A stretch of 64,000 nt of DNA, taken from Octopus bimaculoides (taxonomy: Eukaryota). The translations under genes and the position numbers were made by a program. Below the pieces are notes generated by a model. The model did not search any database. It was not told where the DNA came from and saw nothing but the letters and a program-made list of their open reading frames with translations. Shown here piece by piece: positions 5,931-55,904 of the stretch (the stretch's first letter is position 1; each line of letters opens with the position of its first letter). The stretch is from assembly GCF_001194135.2 (NCBI RefSeq), contig NC_068983.1, positions 137,441,317 to 137,505,316 on the forward strand, given 5' to 3'.

Positions 5931-6107
5931 ATGGTTCAGTCGTATGTCCGGAAAACAGACAATGGGAAGTGGTCATCTAGCCAGATGGTTTCTGCCGTAT
6001 CAGCAGTACTGTCTGGAAGTCTCAGTATTAGAAAAGCTGCTAAGAAGTTCGCAATCCCTAAAGCCACACTCGCTCGTCATTATAAAAAACCGTGTTATTC
6101 CTTCTTA
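5931..6107 (+). CDS. Variable exon V1: pipsqueak-type HTH DNA-binding domain (59 aa), phase-0 donor
   Basis: MVQSYVRKTDNGKWSSSQMVSAVSAVLSGSLSIRKAAKKFAIPKATLARHYK fits the HTH_psq pattern. Donor TTA|GTAAGT at 6107/6108. Confidence 0.85.
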
Positions 6108-7609
6108 GTAAGTAATTCTCACACGCACACACACATATGTATGTATATATATATTTCTATATATATAAAATATCGTTGTATCAAATTTGTTTATTACATA
6201 CATTACGTCTTTAAAGGCTACTTAATTCTAAATTAACTTAAATTTGTTTAATTTTCTTCATTTGCAATGTATGGACTTTTTTGTTATTTTCTATGAAATA
6301 TTTGAAAAATAATTCGATGGCATGTATTACGTATCTGGTGATAGCTTACTTTAAAAAGGTCTGTCAAAAAGAAAACAGTGAAGGGGAAGGTAGATGTTAT
6401 CCACATCAGAAATCGTTATTCGAACTCTTTACTACTAAAGCATTTTTTCAAGAATTATGTTTCTTGATAAAAATTAAAATTTTTATACTTACCCAGCAAT
6501 GTTGATTAGAATGCATAAATACTTATACACACACTAGCATTGCATTAAATATTAAACTGTCCATGGATTTATTCCAAAATAAGAAGGGTTCCACTTTCTA
6601 TTATCGACTGTTAGAACAGTATATGCACACAAATACATATATTTCATATGTATTTATATATTGTTGTGCATGTGTGTGTACATCTAGACATGTCTTCTGG
6701 CACATAATGACTTAGCAAGACGTTCAAACGTTAACTGAAACAATTCTAAATATATGTAGAGCTTAAAATTTATGCTTACAAAGAAAAGATTGACAGTGAG
6801 ACCTGACTTTGTAGTTACACTTGTGATTAGGTTCATCAACTCTTGGAACCAATCCCCGATGAAATAAAAACACTGACAACCTGTTGTTCATCATTGATCA
6901 ATCCGACCAAGCATAACCTGGGGCTAAACAAAGAGCCCTGTGCAGTTAGTTTCTTGGCCTAACTAAATAGCAGATGTCCTTTCAAATCACACCCTACCAT
7001 TTTAAGAATGTATGAGGGACATGGGACACCCAGTCATGACTTGGGGCTAAACAAACGCATACAATCAGATTAAATGGTTTCTATTAAGGACTGGAGAAAT
7101 ATAAGATTTTCTAAACTCAACTCTTCCTGTTCTCAACCATTACCTGATTTAAATTCAGGCATTTTTATTTTCATTCCAATGATCTTTGAAAACACATGTC
7201 ATATTGTTAACTGGGGATATAAACATCCACACTCACAACTGGCATCCCTATTGTTTCCATTTTCCAATTTCTCTTACAAGGCATTAGTTGACCTCCAGCT
7301 GTAGTACAAGACATTTGCCCAAGTTGCCACTTCGGATAACATGTTATGAAGTTAACTCTGTTCATATGGCCATGTGTCTATTATACAGTAATGCCTTGAT
7401 ATAAAAGTTACTCTTTTCCCAGAGATAGCTTGTAAAACGAAAACACATGAAGCAGAACAATAATTTCCCAGAAAAAATATTTTATCTGTAAAATTTATAA
7501 TACTCATAGATAGATGGCAATAAGACAACAGTAGAATGTAAAGAATATCAAGATCATTTATAATAAAAAAATATTTTTATAATCATTTTCTGAATCAATT
7601 TCACTTACA

Positions 7610-7810
7610 CTAGACTCATGCCACCATCACTTGCAGACACGATTGCCAATTTGCAAACACTTGTAGACGGACTTGTAGATTTCTTTTTACATAACAAGTC
7701 TAGAGTTGTTTGCTTAGAAGCTTTTTTTCACTCTCTAAATTTCTCAGTAATACACAGGAACATTTATGGTAGTAGAAATTTTTGCACTTCATTCAGAATT
7801 TGGATCTTGA
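7610..7810 (-). mobile_element. Fossil Tigger/pogo transposase C-terminus
   Basis: Minus strand reads DPNSE*SAKISTTIN...KKASKQTTLDLLCKKK with stops and frameshifts, resembling pogo/Tigger C-termini. Confidence 0.45.
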
Positions 7811-8249
7811 GTTTGAAAAATAAAACTCGTAATGTGAGGTATTAATGTATGTTAATTGCATCCATACAGCCACATGTAATGATGAACTAAATCTACCAAC
7901 ATTATTATGGATCGCTGAGTCCCCAGAAATAGCTGTTGGACTTATAATAACCCCTTTTTAATTCTCTCTGTTGTTTGTACTCTGTAAGTTGGACCTGTTG
8001 TTATAAATATATATTTATACTTCATCATCTGAAAGTATCCATCTTTTGCTTTCTCTTGTTTTGCATATATACATACTTCATATTTCATTCCCAAACTAAT
8101 ATAGTTGATATATCCAGTTTGTTTATTCACGTGATTGCCTCTATGTGTGTGTATATGTATAAGCAGGTACGTGGACACTACATATCCAGATGCTAGGTTC
8201 TCATGCTCACCTCTCTTATTAATACAACCTTTCTTCTTGATTTTCTTTT

Positions 8250-8626
8250 ATTCTTTCTTTTACTTGTTTCAGTCATTTGACTGCAGCCATGCTGGACCAC
8301 CGCCTTTAGTCGAGCAAATCAACCCCAGGACTTATTCTTTGTAAGCCTGGTACTTATTGTATTGGTCTCTTTTTACCGAACCACTAAGTTACGGGGACGT
8401 AAACACACCAGCATTGGTTGTCGAGCGATGGTGGGGGGACAATCACACATACATACATATATAATATATATATATAATGTGACGGGCTTCTTTCAGTTTC
8501 CATCTACCAAATCCGCTCACAAGCTTTGGTCGGCCCGAAGCTATAGTAGAAGACACTTGCCCAAGGTGCCACGCAGTGGGACTGAACCCAGAACCATGTG
8601 GTTGGTAAACAAGCCACTTACCACAC
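8250..8626 (-). mobile_element. Full-length tRNA-derived SINE; further copies or heads at about 3340-3480(-), 16090-16235(+), 37380-37680, 40920-41050(+), 44740-44890(+), 56420-56555(-), 62230-62380(+)
   Basis: Reverse complement has an A-box/B-box head (GTGTGGTAAG...GGTTCAGTCCC), an internal microsatellite and a conserved body. It recurs many times in the window. Confidence 0.85.
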
Positions 8627-9680
8627 ACACAATATCTGTAAGCATTTCTTTGTAGCTGGGCTGTTTGGGTGAGAGATGTCATTATGCACTCTTAAAATAA
8701 ATTAACAGAAATTACAAAAATAAAAGGCATATAACTTACATGTTATAAATTATGCCTTCTGTATTGACAATAAATGTAGATTGCTTGGAGTATATGTTAA
8801 TGTGTGTGGTAGCCATAGAACAATGAATGTGGAAAAGTTCTGATAGGGTTTGGGGGAATAATATTCTACTTCCATGAAAAGCAGAAGTGCCAATGAACTG
8901 AAAGTGAAGTAGGGCATTTAAAGAGCTGAAATATATGTAAGGGTGGTGATGTGAACAATAGATGCTGGATGAAAATGTGTTGTTTGTTAGATACTTACTT
9001 ACCACAGTAAAATGCAGTAAGAAATATGGTGCAGTTTCAAATAACACCATGTCAATAAATCTTAAAAGAGTAGGGCAATAAGTGATGGTATATAGAATCT
9101 AATGCTAATATCAACAAAAGGGCATTGTAATAATAATCCTTATTTAATTTTATTACTGTATTACTTTCACTATTTGCTTGTCTTAACTAATTAATTACCA
9201 ACAGCACTAATTTATATCTGAGTGTGCTGTACACCAGGAATTAACTGCTAGTGGCACCAGTTCAGTTTTGAAATAGTAAACTTGCATTTGGAAATTTCAA
9301 AAGTTAGGGGGGGGGGTTCTGCAAAGTGACAGCCACAAATGACCTCCAGCGAAACTGATAATCAAATAACTTTATAGTTCCACAGATATTCTTTTAATTT
9401 GAAGGCAACATTGGACGTTGATTTTTCCATGATGAAATTTTAACATGAAGTTTCAGGTAATGGAAGTAGTCAACTCACAGACACATACACAAAACTTAGT
9501 TTGCAAGTAATATGGCACAAATACCCTACATCTAGTAGTGGGTCGGTGTATATGTCAATTGACTACTTACTATTTCCATGATGCTTCATTCTAAAATTTC
9601 TTAATATATTCTGATAAATTTTTGAAACCTAACGTATTACCTTATGTTCTAATACCAAATCTTATTTTCTTCCACTCCAG

Positions 9681-9776
9681 CATTTTGTTGGTGGCAATGG
9701 ACCTACACGAGACCACCCTGATCCTCTACCTGTCAGACCAATGAATGTTCTCCATTCCTCAGCTGGTTACATAGAT
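9681..9776 (+). CDS. Isolated phase-0/phase-0 exon encoding a THAP-domain C-terminal segment (32 aa)
   Basis: Acceptor TTTTCTTCCACTCCAG|; HFVGGNGPTRDHPDPLPVRPMNVLHSSAGYID; donor GAT|GTAAGT. Matches the tail of V8 (HFIGKNGPTPEHPDPIP). Confidence 0.7.
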
Positions 9777-15077: not shown

Positions 15078-17031
15078 GGAATTTCATCTTCTAGATGCTA
15101 TTAAGGAATTTTCTTATCAAATACTCAAATACTCTCTTATATATGGCTACGATGCATCAATTTTTAGAATTTTTTTGATCAGACTATGTAAATTTAAAGT
15201 TTCATCATACACTCATACATGCAGTATCCTATCTGTAATACAGTTGCATTAGATTGTGCAGCAGTTTTTTTTTTTTTTGTTACATTCAGGAATAAAAATG
15301 TGCATTTCTGGCATATATGATATTCATGTATATACCTACAGTTACTCTTTTTCCACCTCCCTAATATCCATTTCTGATTTTTCTGTCATCATTGTCCTCT
15401 TTCCAAATTCAGATATCTTGATTTTTGTGTTCTCAATACCCAAAGGTTTTGGTCTCTACTCTGCAATAAATTATCTCCTTTGCATTGCTTAGCAATTGTG
15501 TGGTTCTAAATAGCAATGTTCATGTAATTGGAAAAAGTATTTGGTGTTCTATTTTCCTCATCAGAGCTTTCCGTTTTACAAGAAGATGAATGTCCAGTTT
15601 GACAGTGAATCATCATCTTCATCATCATTTAATTTCCGTTTTCCATGATGGCATGGGTTGGACAGTTTTACTCAAAACTGGTAAGCCAGGGAGCTGCACC
15701 AGGTTCCGATCTGAATTGGCAAAATTTATACAGCTAAATGCCCTTCCAAATGCCATTGTTTTGTTTTTTGTCTGAGATTCCAAGGGCTTGGCACCTTTAT
15801 AATAGGAAGATCATTTTACAACATACATTTAAATATAATGAAAGTCTTTCCAGAGATGTAACTCCACATAAAAATTCTTGAGATTAAGTTTGTGGACACA
15901 TTTTATTTTAGAGCATGGAAGACAGTGATTCGGAATCACATAAACCGTTAACTTCACTTAATCATTTATTAGTTTCAACAGTCTTCATTTGATATCCAGT
16001 TGCAACACTGAATTACAATGGAATTTTGTCAGTGACTAGGTTGCAGATGATGAGATGAAAATTTTGATACCAAATAAGTGATGAAGTATGTAGTTAAGAA
16101 GCTTGCTTCCCAACCATTCAGTATTGGGTTCTGTCCCACTACTCTACACCATGGGCAAGTGTCTTCTACTTTCGCCTTGGGTCGACCAACGTCGCTTGTG
16201 GGTTTGGTAGGTGGAAACTGAAAGAAGTGCATCGTGTGTGTACCATTGTCTAGACCTCACATGATGGTTGTACATAAGCATCATCGTCACCTATGAAAAA
16301 CATGTCTGGCTATGAGAACATATTTCCTTGCTTGGAAACATGAAGAATGGCGACAAGAAGGGTATTTGGCCACAGAAAAATCTACCTCAACAAATTCCCT
16401 CTGACTCATACTAACATGGCAAAGCAGACGTTAAATTATACACACATTGTTATATTATCACGGAATTGTTTGGGATTGTATAACGTTTATTTTGTGTATC
16501 ATGGGGTACAAAAATAAATTTTAATGTTACCAGATATAACATATTTGATCTCTATACAATTAAACACATTTTAAAGTTGACTGAGCCAAGATGAATTACC
16601 TGTGGTACCTTTCGTTGTCAACGTGGAAGTGACATTTTATTGAGTAATGTCTCCGCAGTTATTATTGGCTAGTGTAGGTTTGAAGGACAACAGGTACAAA
16701 ATTGCAACTATCAGGGAATATGGACGTTGTAGATCTTTTATTCCATAATGGATACAAAAATAACTTCATTATCTCAGCACATCCGATGTGCTGGTCTGAA
16801 TAGGTTTTGTGTAATGTGATAAAGATAAGGGACTTTTTTTGTCTACTCAATATTTATAATGACGGGTTGTTAATCGTCTTACAGAGTAATTTGCCTCTGA
16901 ATCAAGGCAACAACAATAAATTCTGTAGCGATTTTAGTTGTGGTTATTTATATCAGTTTTCATTTCATCACCGCCTCTCACCTGTGTGTTCTACGTGAAG
17001 TTCTGTTAGTGTATGTGCCCAAACTTCACAC

Positions 17032-17041
17032 GTCACGTGAC
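17032..17041. promoter_or_regulatory. GTCACGTGAC E-box (USF/MiT-type) in the CpG-rich region upstream of V2
   Basis: Perfect 10-bp palindrome, with a second CACGTG and GCCGCCAT within 80 bp. Confidence 0.5.
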
Positions 17042-17488
17042 AGACTAGTTGCCTCATTTTGAACTAATACTGGAGCGGAGATCATATCACGTGGCTATTG
17101 CCGCCATGTCGCTTTGTTCACGACGGAGCCCCGCCACGACTAATTACTTACTACCGTTAGTAACACTAGCACCCTTACTTCCAATACCTGCTATGTTCTA
17201 ACTGCCGGGATTGGACAACTTTCACTCAGTTCAGTACGAACGTACTTTACCGAATTAGCATAGTAATGCTGTAATGAAATGAATGTGTATGTGCCCGAAA
17301 CGCACACTGCAGCTGTCAATCTATGAAATTGTAAAATTTAATAAACAAATTAACAATTCTATTTTCTGACTAAATTAAACGGTCAATATCAAAGCTAACT
17401 GTCAACTTGTGACTTTCTTAATCTCCTTTAAAAAAACCTTTTGTCAAACGGGAAGTTTTTAATTCTCCTCCGCCGTGTACTTCAACTA

Positions 17489-17665
17489 ATGGGAAGGCCA
17501 AAGAAATATGCCACCGACGAGGAGCGTCGTGCTGCAAAAGCCTTGAGAGAGAGGGATCGGAGAGAGAGAGAAACTGCAGAAAAAAGGAGCAGACGTTTGG
17601 AAAAAATGAGAACGTCTGCACTAAGGAGAAGACAGAAACGTGCTAGTGCTGGCAATGTTGCTAAG
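17489..17665 (+). CDS. Variable exon V2: AT-hook-like GRPKK plus STPR-like charged helix (59 aa), phase-0 donor
   Basis: MGRPKKYATDEERRAAKALRERDRRERETAEKRSRRLEKMRTSALRRRQKRASAGNVAK. Donor AAG|GTAAAG at 17665/17666. Confidence 0.7.
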
Positions 17666-18485
17666 GTAAAGTATTTCTTAACGTGTGTGAATGAGAGATA
17701 GGTGGAGGGGTGCGAAAGTAGTGGGTAAACCCACGGTCGTTTCCTTGGTTACTAACATGTCGAAACGGCGGAACATAGTTTATACGCTACAAGAACATGT
17801 TCAAAATTTTCTTTCAGTTACTGCTGTTTTTAGGTATTAACCTAAAGCGTTGTAGCCGTACTATCCAATCAATATATCGTTTAATAGACGTTAGAATTAT
17901 CTAATAAAATAAAAGGAAATACTTTTCATATAAATTATATATTACGATATGTTGACTGGTGTGTCGCGGTTAGATTGCCTTTGTTCAATTTCCTATTTTA
18001 GCGTTTATTGAAAATCAAGAAAAATTTTACGAAGTGTGTGTTCTTGTTAGCAGCGTTTAAGCAAACTATACATTTCATTATTTCCGTTTCGGCTTTACGC
18101 GTTACTTCTGAATAGTTTTAACGAGTTAGTAAGATAAGAAACAACCATTCTCTGAAGCAAGTTAAGATTTGTGGGGAGTATAATTCTGGTTCTTTGTCTC
18201 AGTAAGATAATTTGATAGTTGGTGGTGATGTTATATCGAATACGCCGTTTTTTCCCCTCTTTTGTGTGTTTATCTGAAGCGATCACAACTACTTTGAAAT
18301 GGAATTTGGATTCCAAATAATATAGATTTTTAAACAGATTTTTCATTGTAGATTTTGAAAAATAAAATACGGCACAACTGAACCATAAGATTATATGAGG
18401 TAGGGTAATTAGTTTCTTCACTTGTATCTCACTTTTTGCGTCTTTCACCTCCTCTTACCCTTACGTAAATCGTATTTGTAAGTCT

Positions 18486-18560
18486 AAGTGAGCACACGTG
18501 ACTTTCAAAGTGAGCGCACGTGACTTTCAAAGTGAGAATAGAGACTTCAAAGTGAGGACA
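18486..18560 (+). repeat. 22-bp tandem repeat (2 near-perfect units plus degenerate ones) carrying CACGTGAC, directly upstream of V3
   Basis: AAGTGAGCACACGTGACTTTCA / AAGTGAGCGCACGTGACTTTCA / AAGTGAGAATAGAGACTTCA / AAGTGAGGACAC. Confidence 0.85.
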
Positions 18561-18609
18561 CATTTCATTTGCGTGACTTAAACAGCTTCGATAAAGTGAT
18601 TTTTTTGCA

Positions 18610-19002
18610 ATGCCTCGGCAAGCCGCATCCAGTGGACGTGGAACAAAAAAGCCGCCTGTGTCCAACGCCGCACGCAATCAACTCATAGATTGTTATGATC
18701 GTGGATCGAACTACAAGGACTTTGCTAAATCCATGGGAATTAATTTAAAGACTGCAAGCAGAATAATTTTAGACTATATAAAAACGGGCAAACGAGAAGC
18801 ATTACTCAAAGGCGGTAGATGCAATGTGAAAGTTGATGATGAGATGCGTGCCTACTTGTACGAAGCAATAAATAACAATCCATCTATCACCTTGCGGAAG
18901 ATAAATGAGGGTATGAGATTGAATTTGCCACAAAAACCACTTGTAAGCGATGGATGCATTTCACGAACTCTTGATCGCATGCTGCTAACAAGAAAAAAAT
19001 TG
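18610..19002 (+). CDS. Variable exon V3: Tc1/IS630-type transposase N-terminal bipartite HTH (131 aa), phase-0 donor
   Basis: RNQLIDCYDRGSNYKDFAKSMGINLKTASRIIL...KGGR...NPSITLRKI...VSDGCISRTLDRMLLTRKKL stops where the DDE domain would begin. Donor TTG|GTGTGT at 19002/19003 is weaker than the others. Confidence 0.75.
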
Positions 19003-20119
19003 GTGTGTAATATAAGTATTGAATTTTGTCGTAATTGTTTTTAAATGATTCTGTATAAATAGAACGAAGAAGTATCGTTATTTTCTCATTTATCAAAAAT
19101 GAATCCAAGAAATGTGGAGGGAGGGGTCGAAAAGCTTCCAAATATTTTACAAAGAAAACAGTTGGATGTTCAGTTTAATTTTTCATTTCCTTAAGAAGTT
19201 TAAAAAAAAAAAAAGAAACTAGCAACAAGCTAGTTATAACTATACTGTGGACGGCTAATTGTAGTATTTTATATATATAAATAAGGTACATAATAATCAT
19301 AGATACGAACATTCACATACTTATACATGCACACACATACTCAGAGGTTCACCGTCCCATTTCCATTGCACACACATTCACATACCTCCCTTTTACATAC
19401 ACACATACAGAGTTGAAACGCTGATTTTTTTTCTCTCACCCCTTCCTTTGTTATTCATTTATCACCCCTTACTTTCTCATATGTTGTGACGGAGAAAGAC
19501 GGAAGATACACGACGCGCTCTTTGCTACTTCCTTTCTCTCGCTCAGTCAGCGCTATTACTCTTACTTCACTGAATTACTATTTTCCCTCCTCTCCCTTCA
19601 CTTATACTACTTTTTCTCCTACTTTGTGGACAAATATATATAAAAACACTGCGGTCATTATATTAGGAGATAAATCGAAATCAGCTACATCACTGGTTCA
19701 CTCTTGCGGTATAGTTTCACATTGCAGTTTAAATTAGTTCACTTCTGTCTCTGGTGCTCATGAGACAGGCATGAACGTCATGCATACTCTTCCTGTACAC
19801 GTGCACAACTGATTATCGGCTCCGTTGTCAGTTGCTTGTTTATGATGCTAGGAAGCATCATGTATATTCCTGAATTTATGAACCTGGTCTCAGATCTTTA
19901 TTCCTTTTCTATTTTCAATCTCCAAATGGTGTGAATATTGAAATTAAAAACTAAAATAATTATCGATTTATGTAAACTAATTCAAATGCCTTTTTTTTTT
20001 TTTTTAGCTCAATTTTTGTTTGAATTCCATAGGTAAACGTATTTTGTGTTTCGAGAGTAGTTGGAAGTTTGTGCCAAATAAGCAAGAGAGCACATTATAA
20101 AAAGCAGGAGTGGGAGTTG

Positions 20120-20128
20120 GCGCATGCG
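20120..20128. promoter_or_regulatory. NRF1-like GCGCATGCG motif upstream of V4
   Basis: About 100 bp upstream of the V4 ATG, with TATAAAA about 25 bp further upstream. Confidence 0.45.
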
Positions 20129-20229
20129 TATCGTTTATTTGGCCGACATATCTCTATTCTTCGCTGGAATATTTTTCTATCTTAATACTTCTTTCTTTAT
20201 TATTATTCATATTATTTCATACTGTAGTC

Positions 20230-20565
20230 ATGCCAGCTTGTGTTGTGGTAGGTTGTAAAGTAAGGGCTACCAAAGAAAATTCTGCGCTCGGCTTGCGGTT
20301 GCATAGATTCCCGCGAAACCCTCATCGGCGTCAGTTGTGGGTAAATGCTATAAACAGGCCAGACTGGATTGCTAGCGACAACGACCGTATCTGTGGCTTG
20401 CATTTCCACAGCCGATACCCCGTTCGTAATACAGCCAGTATTGATTATGTCCCTACAATATTTTCATCAAGGCCACAGGATGAATCTAACTTTGTTACCG
20501 AACAAAGACTGAAATGTTTCAACACTGTAAACAACAGTGCCACGAGATATCCTGATAATGTGATT
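20230..20565 (+). CDS. Variable exon V4: THAP domain (112 aa), phase-0 donor
   Basis: MPACVVVGC...HRFP...LWVNAI...ICGLHF...VPTIF has a complete C2CH signature. Acceptor CTGTAG|TCATG; donor ATT|GTAAGT at 20565/20566. Confidence 0.9.
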
Positions 20566-21557
20566 GTAAGTTTGTTGGGTTCCATGTTATACGATCATGT
20601 AATGTCATTTTTAAGTCAGGGATTTCATTTGGAAAGTTCTTTTTTTTATCAGTTACGCAACTTTATTTTTGTCATGTACTTTTCTATACCCTTGTTTAAT
20701 GTAAAGGGCTTATCTAGTTTTATAATTAAATAATATGCCGCTCACATCACTAACTTTAATAGGCAGTATAGTGACATCCACCAACTTACAATAAAGTATA
20801 AAATTTACTAATTGCTGCACATAATTAGAGAAATAAGTTGGTTAGATTGCATTAGCCTATGGATGTGACTGCTATTTCACACACAAGCTCCTTCAATTGA
20901 CTCGATCCACTTTGCAGTTTCCTCTTAAAATCTTTTGCAAGGGATGTGCCATACCTCATAAAGTTTCCTTATCTGTTTAAATTCTTGGATTTAATTACTT
21001 GTCCTATAAAGTTGATCTATGTCTTGTATATCCTATAATTGTCGGTTACTTTTGCAGAATACCCTAACACAATAGTTATCTGATTTAACATAAACCCAGC
21101 AAATATGAGGGGAGTGGTTTAGTCGATACCATTGACAGTATGAATGAAAATGTAATATGTATTCTATAAATATATTACTATTCTTCTTCCTTTCTTACAA
21201 TTTAAATACTGCTGTTTGAATTTAAGATTTTAAATACAAACGAAATATACATTCATACACTTAATATTTATATGTACATTGCCACAAGTTAAGTTGAAAA
21301 TATGTAGGAAAGTAATACAATATTAAACTTTACAACTCACATCATTCTGTTATTGAAAGCGAACGAGTATACTATATTAAAGCTTTCGTTGTAGTTTATC
21401 TATCCGGGTATGTTTGTTTTTTGTTTTTCTGTTGTTTTTTTTAGAATTTTAGTTCATTTACGAAGCTAAAATATTGGTTGATCTTTTCAAATTACAAGTT
21501 ACATTTTTAGACGATTTAATAAATCGTCTGTTGTGGCCTTAAAGCAAATCCATTACT

Positions 21558-21700
21558 ATGGGTTGCTCTGTTTTCCTAGGGTGACTGACTAATCGCTTTC
21601 TTGGAATTTCTGTTCTGGTACAATCTTGATTGACTAGTTTTTCAAATGAGTGTCTTCATGATATTCATTCTGCTTTGTGCTCGCCACAAATCGAAATTTG
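21558..21700 (+). pseudogene. Possible strongly decayed THAP pseudo-exon
   Basis: MGCSVFLG*LTNRFLGIS...HSALCS in one frame with stops. The conserved W is missing and the spacing is short. Confidence 0.3.
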
Positions 21701-21840
21701 ATTTTTATTTTCTTTCGAAGCAGTTCTCCTTCAGCTCGGAAATAATCTAACAAAGCATGAAATATTTGATTTAGTCTTTGCTTAATTTCATTGAATATTG
21801 CACGCTGAAGGCTTTTTTATTTCCTCTTCTAAATGACGTT

Positions 21841-21861
21841 TTGCGCAAATTAGTGACGTCA
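21841..21861. promoter_or_regulatory. Adjacent C/EBP-type (TTGCGCAA) and CRE (TGACGTCA) palindromes
   Basis: TTGCGCAA at 21841-21848 and TGACGTCA at 21854-21861, upstream of the decayed THAP at 22027. Confidence 0.5.
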
Positions 21862-22026
21862 TTATGACGCCCTTACATCTATGACAAAGTAGTCTAGAAA
21901 TGGCATTTGGGACCTCGTGTTTGTGTTGTTCTTTGACCTCACCCCCATCGGGTTTTTTTCTTTTCTTTAGAAACTACACATTTGTAGAAAATAGGTTGGC
22001 AAAAGAAAAACAAGCTCCTTGTTACC

Positions 22027-22220
22027 ATGGTTACCTGCTGTGTTCTCTGTGGCTGTTAAGGGACGATGGCGTTTACCATAAGTTTCCGCGTTTTTTTAAT
22101 AAATTTGAGGTCTACATTGAATTTGTCCGTACTTTCAAAATATCGTCTATCTTCAATCTATCTAGCTTGATCCGTATTAAATTAGGTCTATGCATAGATT
22201 CCATACCAACTATACTTTAG
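22027..22220 (+). pseudogene. Decayed THAP variable exon (pseudo-exon)
   Basis: MVTCCVLCGC* then, after a frameshift, RDDGVYHKFPRFF...EFVR...DSIPTIL*. THAP start, HxFP and PTI motifs are present; W and CSxH are lost. Confidence 0.6.
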
Positions 22221-23970: not shown

Positions 23971-24234
23971 GTAAATTCCATTAATACTCGTTTAATTGTC
24001 AAATATCGTTGCATGTTTGCATGATAATTTCAACGAATGCCCTTTTTTTTTTCCATAACTATATTTCGTACGTTTCCGGATATTTCCGGAGTAACCTCCC
24101 CACTCGTAATGACATCACTTTAGTGCAACACTGTCGCCATCTTTGTGTGATCTCTGTTAGTTAAGATTTACAGCAGTTCATGTAAAAAGAGAAAAAAGTC
24201 CATACTCTTAGGATTGAAATTTAAATGGTAGCAA

Positions 24235-44953: not shown

Positions 44954-45857
44954 TATATGTGAGTCATCTAAGAGACAATAAGTTAAGGAAAAAATGCATT
45001 TGTATATCTGTCAGCAGAGTGGGTATATTATTCGAAATGTATTAAATATGTATCACGGCTGATCTTACCAATTGGTTTCGTGTAAAGAATACAATGGAGT
45101 GTTAGGTAACAAACTGATTATATAACTTTATGCTCATCAGAGTTAGCTAATAATAAAGAAGGGAATATGCTGACTGCGCTTTATCGTTGGAGGTGAATTA
45201 GTACAACCGGTCAACGGCTGTTGTGAAAAAGGTGGTGAAATGAAAAAGGGCCAAGGGATTAGTTTAGGAGTTATGTATATCCACCTTCAACGGTTTTTCT
45301 AATAAGATTGACAGTGGAAGTTGAGTTTAACCTTAGGCTGCTGATGAGAATTAAGGTAGTCTACACCAAAATTCGAAATCACGATATGGCTATATATATA
45401 TATGCTAAGGACTTACCTCCCTTCATCAGCCATTAAGTATAGTGCTTTAGTGGGTTTGGAGTTAATTTAACTCTTATTTTAGCATAAGCGGTGCTAATCA
45501 TCACCCTCCGTCACTTTTGTGACCTCTATTAACTTTGCCTTTAGGTTCTAATTACTAATAAGCCACCCTTTTAATTTGTTGTGCACACACTAATGTGTGT
45601 GTGTGTATGTGTTCAACATATGTAGTGTATATAGAGAAACTTCGTACATAGTTCATTTCTTCGTTTCGGTTTCAAGTTTTCATTGTACTTATGTTTTAAA
45701 GCCTTTAGGTTCTTGAACATTGCATGATATTCACAGTAATTTTAAAAAACAGTTGTTTGCAACTGTCTAGTGAATTTAATTTACACACGCAACGTTGGTC
45801 AATACCATACGTTCATCCGAATTATTTTATATAGCGTATTCATCATTTTTTGTGACT

Positions 45858-46232
45858 ATGGAATTCACTGTTACTAAACGTGGCGGCAGGAAATTACTAT
45901 ACAATGGATACGCTTATACTGTCGACAAGAAGAAAAATAATATTACATATTGGAAATGTGAAGAAAGAAGAAAATGCGTTGCAAGACTCAAAACAATTGA
46001 TGATGTTCTTCAGTATGATCCACCACCACATTCTCACCCACAAGATGCCTGTAGAAACGTTGTTCTCAAAACAATACAACAAATTACAGCAGGAGCTAAC
46101 GACACAGAAGTTACGAGTACGATAATTGAGAATTGTACACCGGCTTTACCTCAAGAAACAGCAAGTTCCCTATCCCTAAAGGAAAATCCAAACAGAAAAA
46201 GGAGAAAAATGGAAATATTTCAAACGCACAAA
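45858..46232 (+). CDS. Variable exon V12: FLYWCH zinc finger (Mutator-type, 125 aa), phase-0 donor
   Basis: TKRGGRKLLYNGYAY...YWKC..RKCVARL...HSH followed by basic NRKRRK. Acceptor TTTTATATAG| at 45834; donor AAA|GTAAAC at 46232/46233. Confidence 0.88.
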
Positions 46233-46570
46233 GTAAACATATCTACTTTTTTTTATATTATCATTTGTGTATTTTATCACACACTCAAATTTAATAGGAA
46301 AATTAGTGATATTCTTTAGCATTGGTTTTGAAACGCTAAATGAAAATCCTATTTATTTGATTCAAATTCTTAGAACTTGCTTCACATAATATATACTTTC
46401 ATTATTCAGGGCTTATACGGATTGAGACATCACACACACTCCTGTGTGTGTGTGTGTGTGTGTGCGCACGTATGTATGTCTACAGTACCCAGATATGCAC
46501 CTATACATAACAGGTGGATGTCGGTATGCACATACCTGTACGTATATATGCATATACTCATTTACTCTAT

Positions 46571-46622
<52 letters not shown>

Positions 46623-46746
46623 CCTAACATATATATATGTATCTATAGATACACACACACAACCTATATATCTGCATATAAATGTTCACTTTAGTGTCCC
46701 TGCTAAATTCTGGTGTTAGTGATGCGTCTGTCAGATATATATATAT

Positions 46747-47518
46747 AAACAAAACACAAAGGATTCTGCGGTACACGTGTTTCAAGCTTTATAGTTGTTA
46801 CATCAGTGTATAATTGACAGTATAAAGCTATCTTCAGCCGCAAATGTATTCTCTCCCAAGAATTATATCACATAGAAAGATGAGATATAAGAGGTGAGGT
46901 TCCGTTTGGTATTTTGTGTTGCAATATACCTCGTAGAATTCTTAATTTGATATATTTATACATAATTTCCTCGGTACTCCGGAATCCAACCCGTCTAAAT
47001 GGCTTAGATGTATCTTAATTTACTATCCAAATTTTCTCTTATTGTTTCTTAGATCACCCGCCTCACCGATTTGACTCCTTTTATTTTTATTTTTGTATGA
47101 ATATCTGTGTATTTTTCTTCTTAGTATTTTATATTCCTTATTTTATNNNNNNNNNNNNNNNNNNNNNNNNNNNNNNNCTTTAACACTACCCTTATAACTA
47201 ATATTAAATAGTATTGTTTACTTAGCGTTCACTACACACTGAATTGTGGCAAGGTATGGACGGATTCCGGAGTACCAAGGAAATTATGTATAAATATATC
47301 AAATTAAGAATTCTACGAGGTATATTGCAATACAAAATACCAAACGGAACCTCACCTCTTATATCTCATCTTTCTTCCTCCTTTAACTTCTATGTGATAT
47401 AATTCTTGGGAGAGAATACATTTGCGACTGAAGATAGCTTTATACTGTCTATTATACACTGATGTAACAACTATAAAGCTTGAAACATGTGTACCGCAGA
47501 ATCCTTTGTGTTCTGTTT
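46747..47518. mobile_element. MITE-like element with ~250-bp inverted arms (31-N gap inside)
   Basis: 46747-46995 is the reverse complement of about 47258-47518, with several mismatches and one indel. Confidence 0.7.
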
Positions 47519-47617
47519 TTATTTCTACATTTACAATTTATTCATTCGCCCCGACCACGAGCTGGAATACACAGGTGCTTGCAATTATCAAGTATTACCT
47601 CTAACATTTACTTTACC

Positions 47618-47649
<32 letters not shown>

Positions 47650-47809
47650 GATAAATGTATATATACACGTACAGGTATATATATATATATATATATATGT
47701 ATTATATATATTATATATACATGTATATATATGTTTCTATATGTATGTATATATATATTTATGTGTATATATATATATATATTCTATATATATGTATGTA
47801 TGTATATCC

Positions 47810-50340
47810 CAGGGTCACACAGGCCCACTCCTCCCACACCGTCAGAATTGGCACTCTCAACATCGGCACACTGAAAGGTAGGTCTGGTGAGATTGTTGAG
47901 ATGCTTGAACGGAGACGGGTAGATTTGTGCTGCATCCAAGAAGTAAGTTGGAGAGGAGGTTCTACGAGGTTCCTCACAGGCAAAGAACACAGATACAATA
48001 TTTTCTGGGCAGGGAACACTGACGGAGTCGGGGGCATGGGAATACTCCTAGCAGAGAAATGGGTTGATAAGGTAATTGAGGTAGTCAGAATATGTGACAG
48101 AGTACTTAAGATTAGACTAGTGCTTCATCATAGGTTAGCTACCGTCATCTCGGCCTATGCCCCTCAATCGGGACTACTGGATGGGAAGAAAGACCAATTC
48201 TACTACACCCTTCTGCAAACTACCTCATTGACGAATGACGGGGACCTTCTCTTTGTGGCTGGTGATTTCAATGGTCATGTTGGACGTCATGCAGGGGGCT
48301 TCCATGGCATTCATGGAGGCTATGGCTTCAGTTCCTGCAATGAGGAGGGAACCAGACTGCTGGAGTTCTGTGATGCAAACGATCTTATGGTTTGCCATGC
48401 CAACTTCAGGAAACCTGCCTGTCAACTAGTCACCTACTGTTCTGGTAGACACTCTAGCCAAATTGACTACATCCACGCCAGAAATAGGGAAAGAGGGCGA
48501 CTTATAGAATCCAAAACCTTCCCTGGCGAAGAATGTACCCCTTAACACAGATTAGTAGTTAGTGACTTCGGAATCAAGGCAGAAGTAGACCGGCTTGGAG
48601 GAGAAGGGTTTGGAAGCTTAAAGATCCTGAAAATGGACAGAGATTTAGAGACATACTACTTGAAGCATTTGACGAAATAGAAGGGGATATAGCATCATAC
48701 AACGTGGACGACAACTGGAGGTTTCTACGCGACAACCTGCTGAGAGCCACCGACCAGATCTGTGGCTGATGTAAAGTCCTCTCGCGACCCATAGTAACAT
48801 GGTGGTGGAACAATGTGGTTGACAGGGCTATTAGACAAAAGAAACAGGCTTGAAAGGACTGGAAGAACGGAGGTAGCAGGGAACTGTATCAGACTGCTGG
48901 AAGGGAAGCTAGGAGACAGGTTTACTTAGCCAGAGGGGAAGCAGATAAGAAAAAGTTTGCCAATGTTCTGTGCCGTGAGGACCAAAGACTTGAAGTATTT
49001 CGTGTTGCAAGACAGTGTGTGAGAGAGATGGTACACTTGCACTATATGAGGCTGCAAAGAAAGAGGTTTGGAGATGCCACTATGAAAGGTTGCTCAATAA
49101 AGAGAATGAATGGGAGAAAGAAAGTCTGCTGAATGTCGACCCAACAGAGGGACCAGCTATCCAAACTGACAGTACCATGGTAGATAAAGCAATTAAGACT
49201 ATGAAGACAGGGAAAGCCCCCGGCCCATCAGGAATCACCGCAGAGATGCTCAAAATATCTGGTAGTGTCGGCTATAGCCTAGTCACCCATACTGTTAACC
49301 AGGTGCTACACGAAGGAGTCATACCCAATGACTGATGTAGCAGCACCATAGTCAACTGTTACAAAGGTAATGGTGACACTTTAGATACAAATAATTACAG
49401 AGGTATCAAGTTGTTAGATCAGGTAATGAAAGTCACTGAGAGGGTCATAGCCCGACTAATTAGGGAGCTAGTCAGTTTAGATGAGATGCAGTTTGGGTTC
49501 ATGCCAGGGAAAAGCACCACTGATGCTATATTTCTGGTAAGACAGCTGCAGGAGAAATACCTAGCCAAGGATAAACCTCTGTACTTGGCTTTCGTTGATA
49601 TGGAGAAAGCCTTTGACAGGATCCCCTGATCCCTCATCTGGTGGTCAATGAGGAAACTAGGGATAGAAGAATGGTTAGTGAGAGCTGTGTGAGCCATGTA
49701 CAGGGACGCTGTCAGTAAGGTGAGGGTTGGCAATGAGTACAATGAAGAATTCTGGGTAGAGGTAGGGGTCCACCAAGGTTCTGTCCTCAGCTTCCTCCTA
49801 TTTATCATAGTCCTCCAGGCGATAACAGAGGTATTCAAGACAGGATGCCCCTGGGAGCTGCTCTACGCTGATGACCTTGCACTAATTGCTGAGTCACTAT
49901 CAGAACTAGAGAAGTTTCAGGTGTGGAAGCAGGGACTAGAATTGAAGGGCCTTAGAGTCAACCTAGCTAAAACCAAAGTCCTAATAAGTAGAAAGGTAGA
50001 CAAAACACAAACCCCTTCAGGTAAATGGCCCTGCTCGATCGGTACAAAAGGTGTATGTGGCAGATGTTCAGGTGCAATAAACACTGAAAATGTGCAGAAA
50101 ACAACTTCTGTCACATTCCAGGGAGAAAAACTGGACGTAGTTGATAGCTTCCGATATCTGGGTGACCAAGTTAGTAATGGGGGTGGGTGCGCTGAAAGTG
50201 TAGCTGCTAGAATAAGAATAGCCTGGGCAAAGTTCAGAGAGCTCTTACCTCTGCTGGTCACAAAGGGCCTCTCACTCAGAGTAAAAGGCAGACTGTATGA
50301 CGCATGTGTACGAACAGCCATGCTACATGACAGTGAAACA
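47810..50340 (+). mobile_element. RTE-clade LINE (APE endonuclease plus RT), inactivated by stops, 3' end lost in a gap
   Basis: RIGTLNIGTL, AYAPQ, GDFNGHVG, SQIDYI, KAPGPSGI, QFGF, AFVDMEKAFD, GVHQGSVLS, LLYADDL; several in-frame stops. Confidence 0.95.
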
Positions 50341-50887
50341 NNNNNNNNNNNNNNNNNNNNNNNNNNNNNNNNNNNNNNNNNNNNNNNNNNNNNNNNNNNN
50401 NNNNNNNNNNNNNNNNNNNNNNNNNNNNNNNNNNNNNNNNNNNNNNNNNNNNNNNNNNNNNNNNNNNNNNNNNNNNNNNNNNNNNNNNNNNNNNNNNNNN
50501 NNNNNNNNNNNNNNNNNNNNNNNNNNNNNNNNNNNNNNNNNNNNNNNNNNNNNNNNNNNNNNNNNNNNNNNNNNNNNNNNNNNNNNNNNNNNNNNNNNNN
50601 NNNNNNNNNNNNNNNNNNNNNNNNNNNNNNNNNNNNNNNNNNNNNNNNNNNNNNNNNNNNNNNNNNNNNNNNNNNNNNNNNNNNNNNNNNNNNNNNNNNN
50701 NNNNNNNNNNNNNNNNNNNNNNNNNNNNNNNNNNNNNNNNNNNNNNNNNNNNNNNNNNNNNNNNNNNNNNNNNNNNNNNNNNNNNNNNNNNNNNNNNNNN
50801 NNNNNNNNNNNNNNNNNNNNNNNNNNNNNNNNNNNNNNNNNNNNNNNNNNNNNNNNNNNNNNNNNNNNNNNNNNNNNNNNNNNNNNN
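50341..50887. other. Assembly gap (other gaps at 47147-47177 and 52763-52978)
   Basis: Runs of N. Confidence 1.
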
Positions 50888-51465
50888 GTTTTTTACGTGC
50901 CACCTGCACAGGAGCCAATCCAGCGGCACTGGCAACGACCTCGCTCGAATGATTTTCTAACATGCCACCGGCACAAGTTCCAGTAAGGCGACGCTGGTAA
51001 CGATCACGCTCAAATGGTGCTATTTACGGGCCACAAGCACGGAAGCCAGACAGCTGCTCTAGCAATGATCACACTTGGACAGTGCAGTTAGTGCTCCACT
51101 AGCACAGGTGCCAGTCATCGAATGTGGTTCAATTATGATTTCGATTTTACTTGCCCCAACAGGTATTTATAAGCAAAGTTTAGTGTCCAATGAAGGAGAG
51201 GTTGGCATGGGTGCCAGTTATCGGATTCGGTTTGATTTTGATTTCAGATTTCAAATTCACTTGCCTCAACAGGTCTTCGCAAGCAGAGTCCAATGAAGTA
51301 AAGATACAAATAAATGAGCTGGCTACACTTCTACCAGAGGCCACAGGTTATGCTCTTACTTGGCTTGCAATGGGCGATAGTCTGTTTGTAAACTGTCTAC
51401 CATGTGTAAACTTGTGGAACTTTTTTATGCCGAATATAATTGCCAATGCCTCTTTTTCAATTTGG

Positions 51466-52344: not shown

Positions 52345-53893
52345 TTTGATCCTTTCACCTGCACGATTTTCATTCAGAAAAAAAAACTCAGAATGTTTGT
52401 ATGGAATTAAGTACCCTGATCTCCTAATTATGCTGCAAACTCCTTATTTTTTTTTTTGGAAAAAAGGGAGGAGGTCTGGTCACCACCCATCCCCCATATT
52501 CTGGAATCATTGGAATTTTTTTTTTTTCGTTGAATGAATTCTGGTGACTTCCTAATATGCTACAGAACCGTTTTTGGATCCGGAAAATGGGGTGGGGTGA
52601 AGTGAAAGCCTTGGAAATTTCACCTCCCACCTCCATTGATCTTGCATGATTTTCACTAAGAAAAAAATACTCGGATTTTTTGCATGGAATCAAGTAACCT
52701 GACCTCCTAATATGCTGTAAACCACTTATTTTTGTTCGGAAAAAAAGGGTGTGTGGGAAACCNNNNNNNNNNNNNNNNNNNNNNNNNNNNNNNNNNNNNN
52801 NNNNNNNNNNNNNNNNNNNNNNNNNNNNNNNNNNNNNNNNNNNNNNNNNNNNNNNNNNNNNNNNNNNNNNNNNNNNNNNNNNNNNNNNNNNNNNNNNNNN
52901 NNNNNNNNNNNNNNNNNNNNNNNNNNNNNNNNNNNNNNNNNNNNNNNNNNNNNNNNNNNNNNNNNNNNNNNNNNNNNNAAACGGGGTGGGGTGAAACCCT
53001 CGGAAATTTCACCCACACTCCCATTTTCAAATAATTTTTGCTATTTCTTTCTTTATCCATAATTTTAGATAACATTTTGCAGAAATATGTTTTCTCCACA
53101 CACAAAACTGAAACGCATTTCGGCACTAGAAATAGATTTTCTCTTTGCAATTTTTGGCGTCGAAATTTGTTTCATTTTGTGGGGGGAGTTGAGTGGGTGA
53201 CGAAGTTTACCGAAACATTGAATGGATAACAATCTATCGTAATTATATATATCATTATACATCATCATCACCATCATCATTTAACGTCTGCTTTTTATGC
53301 TGGCATGGGTTGAACGGTTTGACAGGACCGGCAAGCCAGGAAAATCTATTCGGGATTATTATATATATTATATCCAGTGATTTTAAGAGGTAGGGAAAAG
53401 ATATTTTGTTAATATTACACTTTTGCTCCGTTTCACTCATACATGCAAAAACTCTAACGTGTTTTTCTTAAGATGAATTCATCGTTTATCTCTCCGCACT
53501 TCGTTACCCCTAACTTCTATAACCTCTGCATTTTCACTTATTTATTTCAAACTTCTTTGAATTTTCAATCTAATGTAATCTACACTCTCTCGAAATCCTA
53601 TTTCTGCAAAATCTTATCTAAAATGATGGGTAAAGAAAGAAATAGCAAAACATATTTGAAAATGGAGGTGGGGGGTGAAATTTCCGCGGGTTCCACACCA
53701 CCCCGTTTTCCTGACCCCCAAAAAGGTTTAGTAGCATATTAGGTCACCAGAATTCACTCAAGGAAAAAAAAAATTCCAATGATTCGGGGATGTGGGGGGG
53801 GGGTCCGATTTACCCCCTTCCTTTTTTTCCGAACAAAAATAAGGAGTTTGCAGCATAGGAGGTCAGGACACTTGATTCCACGCAAAAAATTCG

Positions 53894-53930
<37 letters not shown>

Positions 53931-53955
53931 CTTAGTGAAAATCGTGCGGGTGAAA
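52345..53955. mobile_element. Large non-autonomous inverted-repeat element with ~290-bp arms and internal partial copies
   Basis: 52345-52635 is inverted relative to about 53660-53955. Termini are only loosely piggyBac-like. Confidence 0.55.
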
Positions 53956-54496
53956 AATTCAAATAGTACCTATTATTGTTTATGCAATGCTTGTATTTTA
54001 GGACATGGAGACAGTATTTTATTTTTATAAATCGTTTTGAGTTGTGGTTTAATTCGTGATCATGTATATAGCTTGTAATGGAGACACAATTTTGACACAA
54101 AAAATATAATTGTTGACTTGTTTACGAAGTGTCAAACACACCCATATTTTCACGACAAAAGTTAGAGACGAAACTCCTCTTACATAAGGTTTATTTATGC
54201 GAATAAGAATAGCGACATTTACTATCCATCTCTTTTAACGGTTTTCTCAGAATGTTCATGTATATGTGATTGTTTCTTTCCTACTTCGGTTAACAAGTTC
54301 TTTATGACGCGACAATTCGCTTAACGTTCATCACTTCATTGTACATTAACGAGAGCCGTACGAGATCACGTTTTTACTTGAATGTTAACTTCACGTAACT
54401 GGAGTTAAAATTAAGGATCCCCCCCCCCCCGACACACTTAACTCTCATTGGAGATTTGTCTCTGTTCTGTTTTGCAAAATAAATTTTCGAATAGTC

Positions 54497-54934
54497 ATGT
54501 CATCTAAACCCAAAACAAAGAGAAAGCGCAAAGTCATAACGATCCAACAAAAACAGGAAATTATCAACAAATTCGAACAAGGCTTTAAAAGAAGTGTTCT
54601 TTGTACTGAATACGGGCTCCCCCCTTCGACTGTTGCAACCATATGTGCTCAAAAAGAAAGACTAAAATCTGTGAAGGTAATTGATAAATCAACCAGAGTC
54701 TTTAAAAACAGGTCTTTCATAGTCGAAGTAGAGAAGCGTTTGTTAATGTGGATAAAGGAAAAACAAAAGACGGGGGACCAAGTAAATATGGAAGTTATTC
54801 GTGAAAAAGCCTTAGAGATTTATGAACATGTGAAGAACAGCTTCCCCCGTAGTTCAGATTACGAAATTCGTCCATTTAAGGCTAGTCAAGGTTGGTTTCA
54901 TAAATTTAAAAAGAGAGCAGAAATTGCGAACTTG
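54497..54934 (+). CDS. Variable exon V13: CENP-B/pogo psq-HTH plus Tc5-HTH (146 aa), phase-0 donor
   Basis: KRKRKVITIQQKQEII...YGLPPSTVATI...VEKRLLMWI...IREKALEIY...FKASQGWFHKFKKR. Acceptor AATAG|TCATG; donor TTG|GTAAGT at 54934/54935. Confidence 0.92.
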
Positions 54935-55904
54935 GTAAGTACTTATCACCATATTTGTCAATAAATGCTACGTTGCATCGATTTGAGACACGTCAATATC
55001 TAACAGGTCTGATTGTAATCGATCAACACGCGTGTTGATCTAATTCAGACATTCATTTTAGGATAGTTTTCATTTTACGAGGCTGTTCTAAAACCCAAAT
55101 ATACTAGTTAACTAGTGTCTGTTTATACAAACACACAAGAATAGTTTATATAGACACACTCTTTGTACGTGTGGGTGTGATGTTATTATTATTATTATAT
55201 ATATATATGCACACGTGTATGTGTGTATTATATATATAATATTTTTATTTATTAATATTAATCGGCATGAGTTACAGTGACTCAAGGCTCGAGAGATTCG
55301 TGCATGCTACTTATCAAACTGTCAGTTTGGTAAATGGCATCATGAAACTCTCGGCCCTTGAGTCACATTGTAACTTCTGTCGATTAATAATAATAATAAT
55401 AATATATATGAATGTGTATGTGTGTGCATGCATACACGCGCACATTATCATCATCGTTTAACGTCCGGTTTCCATACTGCCGTGATCTGTGCCGTTAGCT
55501 AACAAGCCAGAGGACTGTGCTAAGCTCTGTTGTCTGCTTTGGTCGGATGTTCCTCCTAACGCCAACCACTTTACAAAGTGTATTAGGTGCTTTATCGTTA
55601 GTTCGAAAAATATATTTTGTCGGACTAACAATTATGGATTTATTCACTCACACTTATCGTTGATTTCTTTATTCTAAGTGGCCACACAACTTCTTTCGAA
55701 CTTATCACTCTCTGGAAGGAATGTGTGTGCGTGCGTGCGGGTGTGACTCTTGTTAAGTAGTTTGCTTCACAACCATGTGAATTTGAGTTCAGTCCCACTG
55801 TGTGACACCTTGTGCAAGTATCTTCTAGAATAGACTCAGACTGGACAAAACTTTGTTGGTCGATTTGATAGAAGGAAATTGAATGTTTGTTTATGTGTAT
55901 TCTA

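Follow-up and report, generated by a model that had tools for sequence, protein, structure and literature searches.

Probable alternative DNA-binding first exons joined in frame to shared BTB exons in two tandem genes of Octopus bimaculoides

How does one stretch of octopus DNA come to hold thirteen open reading frames (ORFs) of some nine unrelated domain classes, all of which end in a splice donor of the same phase? The question was raised by a window (the whole stretch of DNA analysed) of 64,000 nucleotides (nt) from Octopus bimaculoides (contig NC_068983.1, positions 137,441,317 to 137,505,316 of the forward strand). The answer that we hold to be highly probable is that these ORFs (V1–V13) are alternative first exons coding for DNA-binding domains, which are spliced in frame to shared BTB exons of two tandem genes, LOC106877732 and its paralogue LOC106877745. 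Positions are those of the window, and coordinates are collected in Table 1.

Exon structure of the two genes

A search with the BTB-containing constant region as query yielded RefSeq proteins of Octopus bimaculoides that match it with 100% identity; they are isoforms of LOC106877732 ('uncharacterized protein') with labels that run to at least X36. The same search returned orthologues from O. sinensis, O. vulgaris, Argonauta hians and the cuttlefish Acanthosepion pharaonis, as well as the tandemly numbered paralogues LOC106877737, -38, -41, -43, -44 and -45. The window holds the 3' two-thirds of LOC106877732, which continues 5' of the window, and all coding exons annotated in the two retrieved RefSeq isoforms of LOC106877745. 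V1–V11 belong to LOC106877732 and lie 5' of its constant exons C1–C3; V12 and V13 are exons of the neighbouring LOC106877745 and lie 5' of C1'–C3'. All are on the plus strand, in cis order. The single constant exon assumed by the first-pass annotation of this DNA was therefore replaced by two paralogous genes, as V12 and V13 feed C1' at 57602 and not the BTB exons at 34–36 kb. C1 is present in every LOC106877732 isoform, and C1' has the same phases as C1 (acceptor 0, donor 2).

All 13 donor nine-mers quoted in the first-pass annotation were found at the expected ORF ends and are of phase 0. Every donor GT follows a complete codon; each ORF starts with an ATG, reads 2–55 codons into the intron and then stops. 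The partner acceptors (C1 at 34114, C1' at 57602 and I3 at 9681) are likewise all of phase 0, as had been predicted. Exon–intron structure and phase are observed properties of this locus. Twelve of the 13 predicted products were identical to RefSeq isoforms residue for residue: V3 to X18 (P0001), V4 to X26, V5 to X14 (P0002), V6 to X28 (P0054), V7 to X24, V9 to X3, V10 to X15 (P0003) and V11 to X25, and in LOC106877745 V12 to X2 (P0029) and V13 to X1 (P0061); V8 plus the constant region (P0065) and V1 plus I3 plus the constant region are the two 625-residue isoforms X33 and X34. The joins of V4, V7, V8, V9, V11 and V1 plus I3 were identified by exact-sequence look-up of the built constructs. 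The RefSeq proteins for V1 and V3–V13 begin at the first ATG of their own exon, a few codons past an in-frame stop. Several isoform proteins also occur in an older EukProt copy with isoform numbers offset by one or two, which suggests that more than one annotation run lies behind the isoform models. The exon–intron facts are already implicit in the public RefSeq models.

The fusion proposed for V1 held with regard to phase and frame and was corrected with regard to its partner. V1 is joined to the shared internal exon I3 (96 nt, 32 codons) and only then to C1, which gives the annotated 625-residue product exactly. A direct V1–C1 join was absent from the protein collection, and this was resolved via I3. 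The exon (peptide HFVGGNGPTRDHPDPLPV...GYID) is carried by isoforms X4–X13, X16, X19–X21 and X29–X36 and also serves variable exons 5' of the window, along with two more small shared exons there. Alone, I3 gave no Pfam match. Its sequence shares 67% identity with the tail of V8 (29784–29837), and 31 of its 32 residues match in Argonauta hians (P0009). On account of this similarity to V8 and of the common ...HF/VGGNGPT junction (the slash marks the exon boundary), I3 appears to be the C-terminal part of a THAP domain. In several upstream exons the THAP sequence breaks off at ...HF; the domain appears to be split there, with I3 completing it (...CSKHF/VGGNGPTRDHPDP...).

Donors were scored over all GT dinucleotides from the ATG to 100 nt past the ORF stop by using a generic metazoan matrix, not trained on the species. 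The chosen donor was the best-scoring GT in ten of the 13 exons and ranked third in V4, V8 and V12. The top site was of phase 0 in 11 of the 13 exons, compared with 32% of all GTs (P~1.5e-4), in agreement with the first-pass annotation; chance as the cause of the phase-0 donors was ruled out by this scoring.

Two further statements of that annotation, that the donors lie just after the DNA-binding domain and that unrelated sequences have converged on one phase, apply to part of the exons. The distance from domain end to donor is at most 10 residues in V1, V3, V5, V8, V11 and V13 (2 residues past the end of the domain match in V5 and V13; HTH_Tnp_Tc5 in V13), 15–40 residues in V4, V6, V7 and V9, and 65–84 residues in V10 and V12. 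V4, V6, V7 and V8 are THAP paralogues, and V5 and V13 are pogo-type paralogues (31% identical, with ends within one residue of each other); the other variable exons have no mutual similarity and belong to different Pfam families. Once paralogy is counted, about nine unrelated domain classes are present. Since V4/V6/V7/V8, V5/V13 and I3/V8 tail are related, some donor phases were probably inherited and are not convergent; the V5 and V13 donors may go back to one ancestral exon or may be set by where the domain ends. It had also been argued that the common phase implies selection. Every alternative first exon that works has to match in phase, so that the match by itself is a matter of survivorship; it is the cross-species data given below that demonstrate selection. 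When the N-termini of all isoforms were used as tblastn queries, no additional variable exon came to light in the window.

Table 1. Features of the 64,000-nt window. The slash marks the exon boundary; E is the expectation value; empty cells, no entry.
Feature	Position	Strand	Description	Splice sites and matches
V1	5931–6107	+	HTH_psq	donor TTA/GTAAGT, phase 0; Pfam E=2.4e-11
V2	17489–17665	+	candidate first exon, basic AT-hook-like peptide (MGRPKKY...)	donor AAG/GTAAAG, phase 0
V3	18610–19002	+	Tc1/mariner-like paired helix-turn-helix (HTH)	donor TTG/GTGTGT, phase 0; weak Pfam HTH_29, HTH_32
V4	20230–20565	+	THAP	donor ATT/GTAAGT, phase 0; E=4e-15
V5	23518–23970	+	pogo-type DNA-binding domain (CENP-B_N + HTH_Tnp_Tc5)	donor AAG/GTAAAT, phase 0
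V6	24235–24546	+	THAP	donor GAG/GTAGAT, phase 0; E=6e-16
V7	24906–25280	+	THAP	donor CAA/GTAAGT, phase 0; E=1e-12
V8	29580–29852	+	THAP with tail homologous to I3	donor CAG/GTTAAT, phase 0; E=1e-7
V9	30364–31365	+	QRICH1/DUF3504	donor CAG/GTGGGT, phase 0; Pfam matches below gathering score
V10	32322–32774	+	single C2H2/GAGA-like finger, long Ser/Thr-rich tail	donor CTG/GTAAGT, phase 0; weak Pfam
V11	33057–33416	+	zf-C17orf113-like finger	donor AAG/GTAAGT, phase 0; Pfam E=7e-4
V12	45858–46232	+	first exon of LOC106877745, FLYWCH	weak donor AAA/GTAAAC, phase 0; E=3.6e-13
V13	54497–54934	+	first exon of LOC106877745, pogo-type DNA-binding domain (CENP-B_N + HTH_Tnp_Tc5)	donor TTG/GTAAGT, phase 0
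I3	9681–9776	+	shared internal exon	acceptor phase 0, donor phase 0
C1	34114–34349	+	first constant exon of LOC106877732 (AGPSNQ...)	acceptor cag/GCA, phase 0; donor phase 2
C2	34435–34738	+	constant exon, linker and N-terminal part of BTB
C3	35087–36151	+	last coding exon, remaining BTB, long C-terminal tail, stop codon	Pfam BTB E=2.4e-8
C1'	57602–57801	+	first constant exon of LOC106877745 (AGSSNK...)	acceptor tag/GCA, phase 0; donor phase 2
C2'	57895–58189	+	constant exon of LOC106877745
C3'	60280–61287	+	BTB and tail exon of LOC106877745, stop codon included
Block 5' of V5	23377–23476		conserved, non-coding
Block 5' of V6	24077–24176		conserved, non-coding
Block 5' of V7	24777–24876		conserved, non-coding
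Block 5' of V8	28977–29576		conserved, non-coding
Block 5' of V10	31677–31976		conserved, non-coding
HTH relic	4560–4850	+	frameshifted, Tc1/mariner type	Pfam DUF4817 E=2e-5, HTH_32 E=1.5e-3
Gap 1	47147–47177		AT-rich non-coding, ~440 nt 5' of long TA microsatellite (47618–47807)
LINE	47600–50960	+	APE endonuclease and reverse transcriptase, V12-to-C1' intron	Pfam Exo_endo_phos, RVT_1
Gap 2	50341–50887		547 N, inside LINE with endonuclease and reverse transcriptase ORFs
Gap 3	52763–52978		flanks non-coding

Purifying selection on the variable exons

Logan contigs of a second Octopus species (L001–L009; runs SRR11869384–94) covered V2–V11 and V13, that is 11 of the 13 exons. The species is distinct from O. 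bimaculoides and from O. sinensis/O. vulgaris, and its synonymous divergence (dS) from the window is ~0.16. Contigs L001–L004, which are collinear with window positions 19477–34948, were reached through the cluster mate of the V9 ORF (P0071), L005–L007 through a 91%-identical V13 ORF (P0072) and L008–L009, which carry V3 too, through a 94%-identical V2 ORF (P0222).

All 11 ORFs were intact in the second species, and all 11 have GT at the same position, the V3 donor being kept as GTATGT. The ratio of nonsynonymous to synonymous divergence (dN/dS) was 0.18 for V2, 0.27 for V3, 0.32 for V4, 0.05 for V5, 0 for V6 (no nonsynonymous and six synonymous changes), 0.13 for V7, 0.10 for V8, 0.09 for V9, 0.51 for V10, 0.05 for V11 and 0.27 for V13, and 0.17 for the pooled exons; ten of the 11 exons were individually below 1 at P<0.02. 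C1 had no nonsynonymous changes. Conservation and purifying selection were thus observed, and neither a dN/dS near 1 nor a failure of the donors to be conserved was found, so the comparison proposed in the first-pass annotation came out in favour of its claim.

Under stricter gap penalties the indels within exons measured 3, 9 and 3 nt (one of 3 nt in V4 and one of 9 nt in V10), and frameshifting indels start 6–28 nt past the donor in V3, V5, V6, V7, V8, V9 and V13. Because the exon indels are in frame and the frameshifts begin just downstream, coding constraint ends at the donor. A compensating −2/+2 pair in V3, which was seen upon realignment with looser penalties, was taken as an alignment artefact; the stricter alignment has no V3 indel. 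The read-through tail of V13 differs between the species (9 versus 34 codons). The in-frame fusions are maintained by selection.

For V12 the evidence is at the protein level only, where the O. vulgaris/O. sinensis orthologue P0030 shares the junction ...QTNK/AGSSNK. Annotated proteins of O. sinensis and O. vulgaris (P0008, P0070) contain the V9 junction too, and the Argonauta model keeps the I3/AGPSNQ junction. In the cuttlefish protein P0024 an HTH N-terminus is joined at ...HQ/GPSNQGYSGK; as the junction is shared, the C1 junction probably predates the octopod–decapod split. Further contigs in which an HTH (P0034), a V2-like basic N-terminus (P0039), THAP (P0045) or psq/Tc5 (P0046) is fused to BTB behave like spliced mRNAs, since they are intronless and barely longer than the coding sequence. 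The tandem family comprises at least seven such genes.

When compared with solved structures, the BTB domain was closest to IVNS1ABP (E=1.3e-10), ZBTB17/BCL6 and SLX4. Nothing specific to the TTK type of arthropods emerged from this comparison, in which the BTB of Drosophila CG6765 matched the octopus BTB with E=5e-4. A C-terminal motif, ...EGVYPVGLFTAGGD.LPLSSTQVTNVKNIGLYKTDGLT (35900–36148), is nearly invariant across the tandem paralogues P0011–P0028 and still recognisable in distant relatives (P0130: PYPISLFSV...).

Putative promoters and rival explanations

The G+C content of the window is 36% (AT-rich). The observed/expected CpG ratio, calculated in 1-kb bins, was sharply bimodal, with values of 0.8–1.4 at all variable exons and 0.05–0.3 nearly everywhere else. 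CpG-rich bins span 4001–6000 (V1), 16001–34000 (V2–V11), 45001–47000 (V12) and 53001–55000 (V13). The ratio was low in I3 (0.20, as is usual for gene bodies), C2, C3 (0.25), C1'–C3' and the long introns; C1, with 0.91, sits at the edge of the V2–V11 island. Over 100–300 bp 5' of V5–V10 the identity between the two Octopus species was 0.90–0.97, and in the blocks 5' of V5, V6, V7, V8 and V10 given in Table 1 it was 0.87–0.97, which is as high as in the exons; the remaining spacers had identities of 0.4–0.8 and many indels. Upon translation, the blocks 5' of V8 and V10 (28.9–29.6 kb and 31.6–32.3 kb) contained no ORFs and were full of stops. These conserved upstream blocks are candidate promoters or 5' untranslated regions. 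Methylation is linked to CpG loss, and on this basis the islands would be germline-unmethylated promoters in a methylated gene body; each variable exon probably has its own promoter.

It could be argued that each variable ORF is a single-exon gene of its own or a piece of a decaying transposon, and that a gene predictor has chained these ORFs to the nearest BTB exons to yield the RefSeq isoforms. The XP models are indeed predictions, the domains are of transposon type and the original annotation called some of the ORFs as separate small proteins, such as the UniProt THAP protein A0A0L8GD14 (198 residues), which reads through the donor. This explanation is nevertheless very unlikely: constraint stops at the donors, where GT is kept in 11 of 11 cases, with in-frame indels on the exon side and frameshifts 6–28 nt downstream; the read-through tails differ between species; no catalytic remnants are present; intronless, mRNA-like contigs that combine a DNA-binding domain with BTB occur in other cephalopods; and the annotation of four other species has the same junction. 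That separate transcripts are joined by trans-splicing, as happens in Drosophila mod(mdg4) and lola, is suggested by analogy only, in that a constant BTB part is combined with many variable DNA-binding parts including FLYWCH. As the variable exons lie on the same strand and 5' of the constant exons, cis-splicing suffices and nothing in the sequence requires trans-splicing, which we regard as extremely improbable.

The joins could also be real and the variable exons nonetheless be mutually exclusive internal exons of the Dscam type, transcribed from one or a few promoters far upstream. The gene does extend 5' of the window, the upstream isoforms X4 and X7 chain two variable exons with I1–I3, and a crude acceptor scan found moderately good AG sites 150–250 nt 5' of V4, V5 and V10. 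Against this, the RefSeq proteins of V1 and V3–V13 begin at their own ATG soon after an in-frame stop, CpG islands are found at the variable exons while the true internal exon I3 is CpG-depleted, and conserved non-coding blocks lie directly 5' of exons. Internal exons of this kind are therefore considered unlikely.

Several observations weigh against alternative first exons with promoters of their own, or against single members of the set. The crude acceptor matrix did not separate true acceptors from sites 5' of the variable exons; the CpG islands may in part have a cause other than promoter activity, and there may be a shared non-coding leader exon followed by mutually exclusive internal exons. 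The RefSeq XP isoforms are computational gene models. The donors of V12 (AAA/GTAAAC) and V8 (CAG/GTTAAT) are weak and are outscored by nearby GTs, and V10 is under weak constraint, its dN/dS not being significantly below 1 (P=0.06). For V2 plus the constant region, exact look-up in the protein collection gave no match among the RefSeq isoforms retrieved. V2 has no Pfam domain; a basic N-terminus of its class is fused to BTB in the paralogues P0015, P0022, P0028 and P0044 as well as in the mRNA-like contig P0039. On account of this and of its conservation across species, V2 is likely to be a real, unannotated exon.

In the arrangement of alternative first exons preferred here, each gene consists of an array of 5' coding exons, each with its own ATG, followed by three shared exons. 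The variable modules comprise HTH_psq, Tc1-like HTH, pogo CENP-B/Tc5 HTH, THAP, FLYWCH, Crypton-derived DUF3504, odd zinc fingers and the basic AT-hook-like peptide. Transcription from one promoter would lead to joining of the donor of that variable exon to the first available phase-0 acceptor, which would be C1 or C1', or I3 in the case of V1 and of exons 5' of the window. The product would be a protein with the order DNA-binding domain, linker, BTB and tail, which would be expected to dimerise through BTB and to act as a sequence-specific transcription regulator.

Probable transposon origin, known systems and significance

V13 was searched against 1.84 billion representatives, and the matches end at query residues 141–146. 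Eight of ten long (524–591 residues) pogo-type relatives scanned carry DDE_1; in these, HTH_Tnp_Tc5 ends at residues 142–150 and DDE_1 begins at residues 211–224. The homologues of V13 are the N-terminal DNA-binding domains (140–150 residues) of DDE_1 pogo transposases. The first-pass annotation had placed the donor where the DDE domain would start; it does coincide with the end of the DNA-binding domain in pogo relatives, and DDE_1 follows ~65–75 residues on, so that the V5/V13 donor would precede a linker of ~70 residues and not fall at the first catalytic residue. When 45 long pogo-type proteins were used as tblastn queries, the V5 and V13 exons were the only matches in the window, and no DDE segment was found downstream of either. 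In V9 the recombinase-like fold itself is the retained part, and its QRICH1/DUF3504 match, below the gathering score, is consistent with a domesticated Crypton tyrosine-recombinase fold. A transposon origin of THAP and FLYWCH is taken from the literature (PMC10027918). The locus would most likely have arisen by repeated insertion of transposons, or by duplication of variable exons, upstream of a BTB gene; the copies retained would be those with an in-phase donor after the DNA-binding domain, and the catalytic parts would have been lost.

Other transposon-related sequence lies in the window. The HTH relic at 4560–4850 is without an intact ATG-initiated ORF and is situated inside the CpG-rich island just 5' of V1; no RefSeq isoforms map to it, and it may be a decayed variable exon or a plain transposable element fragment. 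At 464–607 on the minus strand, tblastn gave a weak match (E=0.007) to the DDE_3 region of a Tc1/mariner-like protein; this is probably what is left of an old transposon and has no relation to the variable exons. The LINE (long interspersed nuclear element) in the V12-to-C1' intron is not part of the gene product; its G+C content is 0.45–0.48, compared with 0.32–0.40 in most other 1-kb bins. All three assembly gaps, which are the three N runs of the window, are in the same intron, 5' of V13, and the exon edges closest to them are at distances of 915 and 1519 nt. They affect no exon, donor or frame and leave only the intron length uncertain; the gaps could hide a further variable exon of LOC106877745. 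TA and CA/TG microsatellite tracts (46377–46719 and 47480–47881) give rise to spurious ORFs rich in Y, I, H, T and C.

The Drosophila genes lola and mod(mdg4) are BTB transcription-factor genes with 20–31 isoform-specific DNA-binding ends. The octopus genes resemble them in that one BTB domain is shared by isoforms with differing DNA-binding exons, FLYWCH among them, and in the similar number of isoforms (at least 36 here). They are a mirror image of the Drosophila genes, with BTB in the 3' constant exons (C2–C3) and the variable exons 5'; the variable domains are from about nine unrelated families rather than one, and the exons are all on one strand, with no sign of or need for trans-splicing. 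In the clustered protocadherin and UGT1A loci, variable first exons are spliced to constant exons, and the variable exons are mutually paralogous. Tandem 5' exons on the same strand, each with an ATG and one donor and joined to the first constant exon, are common to these loci and the octopus genes, in which each variable exon also appears to have its own CpG-rich promoter region. Unlike in protocadherin and UGT1A, most octopus variable exons are unrelated and captured from different transposon superfamilies, and the product is a nuclear protein with a DNA-binding domain and BTB, not a membrane receptor or an enzyme.

A single capture of this kind is known from vertebrates, where a Crypton inserted upstream of KCTD1 gave rise to isoform b with an N-terminal DUF3504 and a C-terminal BTB domain (Kojima and Jurka 2011, PMC3212892). 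The order of domains is the same with V9, in which a DUF3504 match (below the Pfam gathering score) is followed by BTB; unlike KCTD1, the octopus locus has dozens of captures from many superfamilies in a tandem family of at least seven genes. In Octopus, THAP and CENPB factors are described as mostly carrying BTB/POZ (Mukherjee and Moroz 2023, PMC10027918). Judged by their domain combinations, the THAP, CENPB and HTH-psq BTB/POZ factors listed in that paper are probably the same as, or closely related to, the proteins described here. The paper counts such factors as separate expanded genes and treats BTB as a transposon component; the word 'isoform' is absent from the main text, and 12 of the 14 matching passages contain no reference to splice phase, alternative first exons or constant exons in common. 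Searches of the literature turned up neither a description of the locus or its architecture nor a paper that names LOC106877732. The architecture as a whole, with dozens of unrelated and mostly transposon-derived first exons, one BTB scaffold and a tandem family, appears to be undescribed.

Among the known cases in which one host domain has repeatedly captured unrelated transposon DNA-binding domains as alternative first exons, this locus would be the largest, and its arrangement is apparently conserved between octopods and cuttlefish. It would provide a natural series for transposase capture, with regard to donor origin, loss of catalytic parts and order of captures, and a lophotrochozoan counterpart of lola and mod(mdg4) with the opposite polarity. 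The counts of 'expanded' Octopus THAP, CENPB and psq transcription-factor genes would be inflated, as many of these would be isoforms of few genes. Quite tentatively, and with more doubt than confidence, a cephalopod-specific generator of transcription-factor diversity, formed by the locus together with its tandem paralogues, can be proposed, or alternatively a surveillance system similar to KRAB-ZNF. In a surveillance system, each DNA-binding domain taken over from a transposase would bind the ends of the transposon family from which it came, and repressors would be recruited by BTB. In a generator of diversity, cell-specific and possibly stochastic choice between dozens of promoters would equip one BTB dimerisation scaffold with different transposon-derived heads, and BTB homo- and heterodimers of the isoforms would form a combinatorial code, a nuclear counterpart of the expanded octopus protocadherins.

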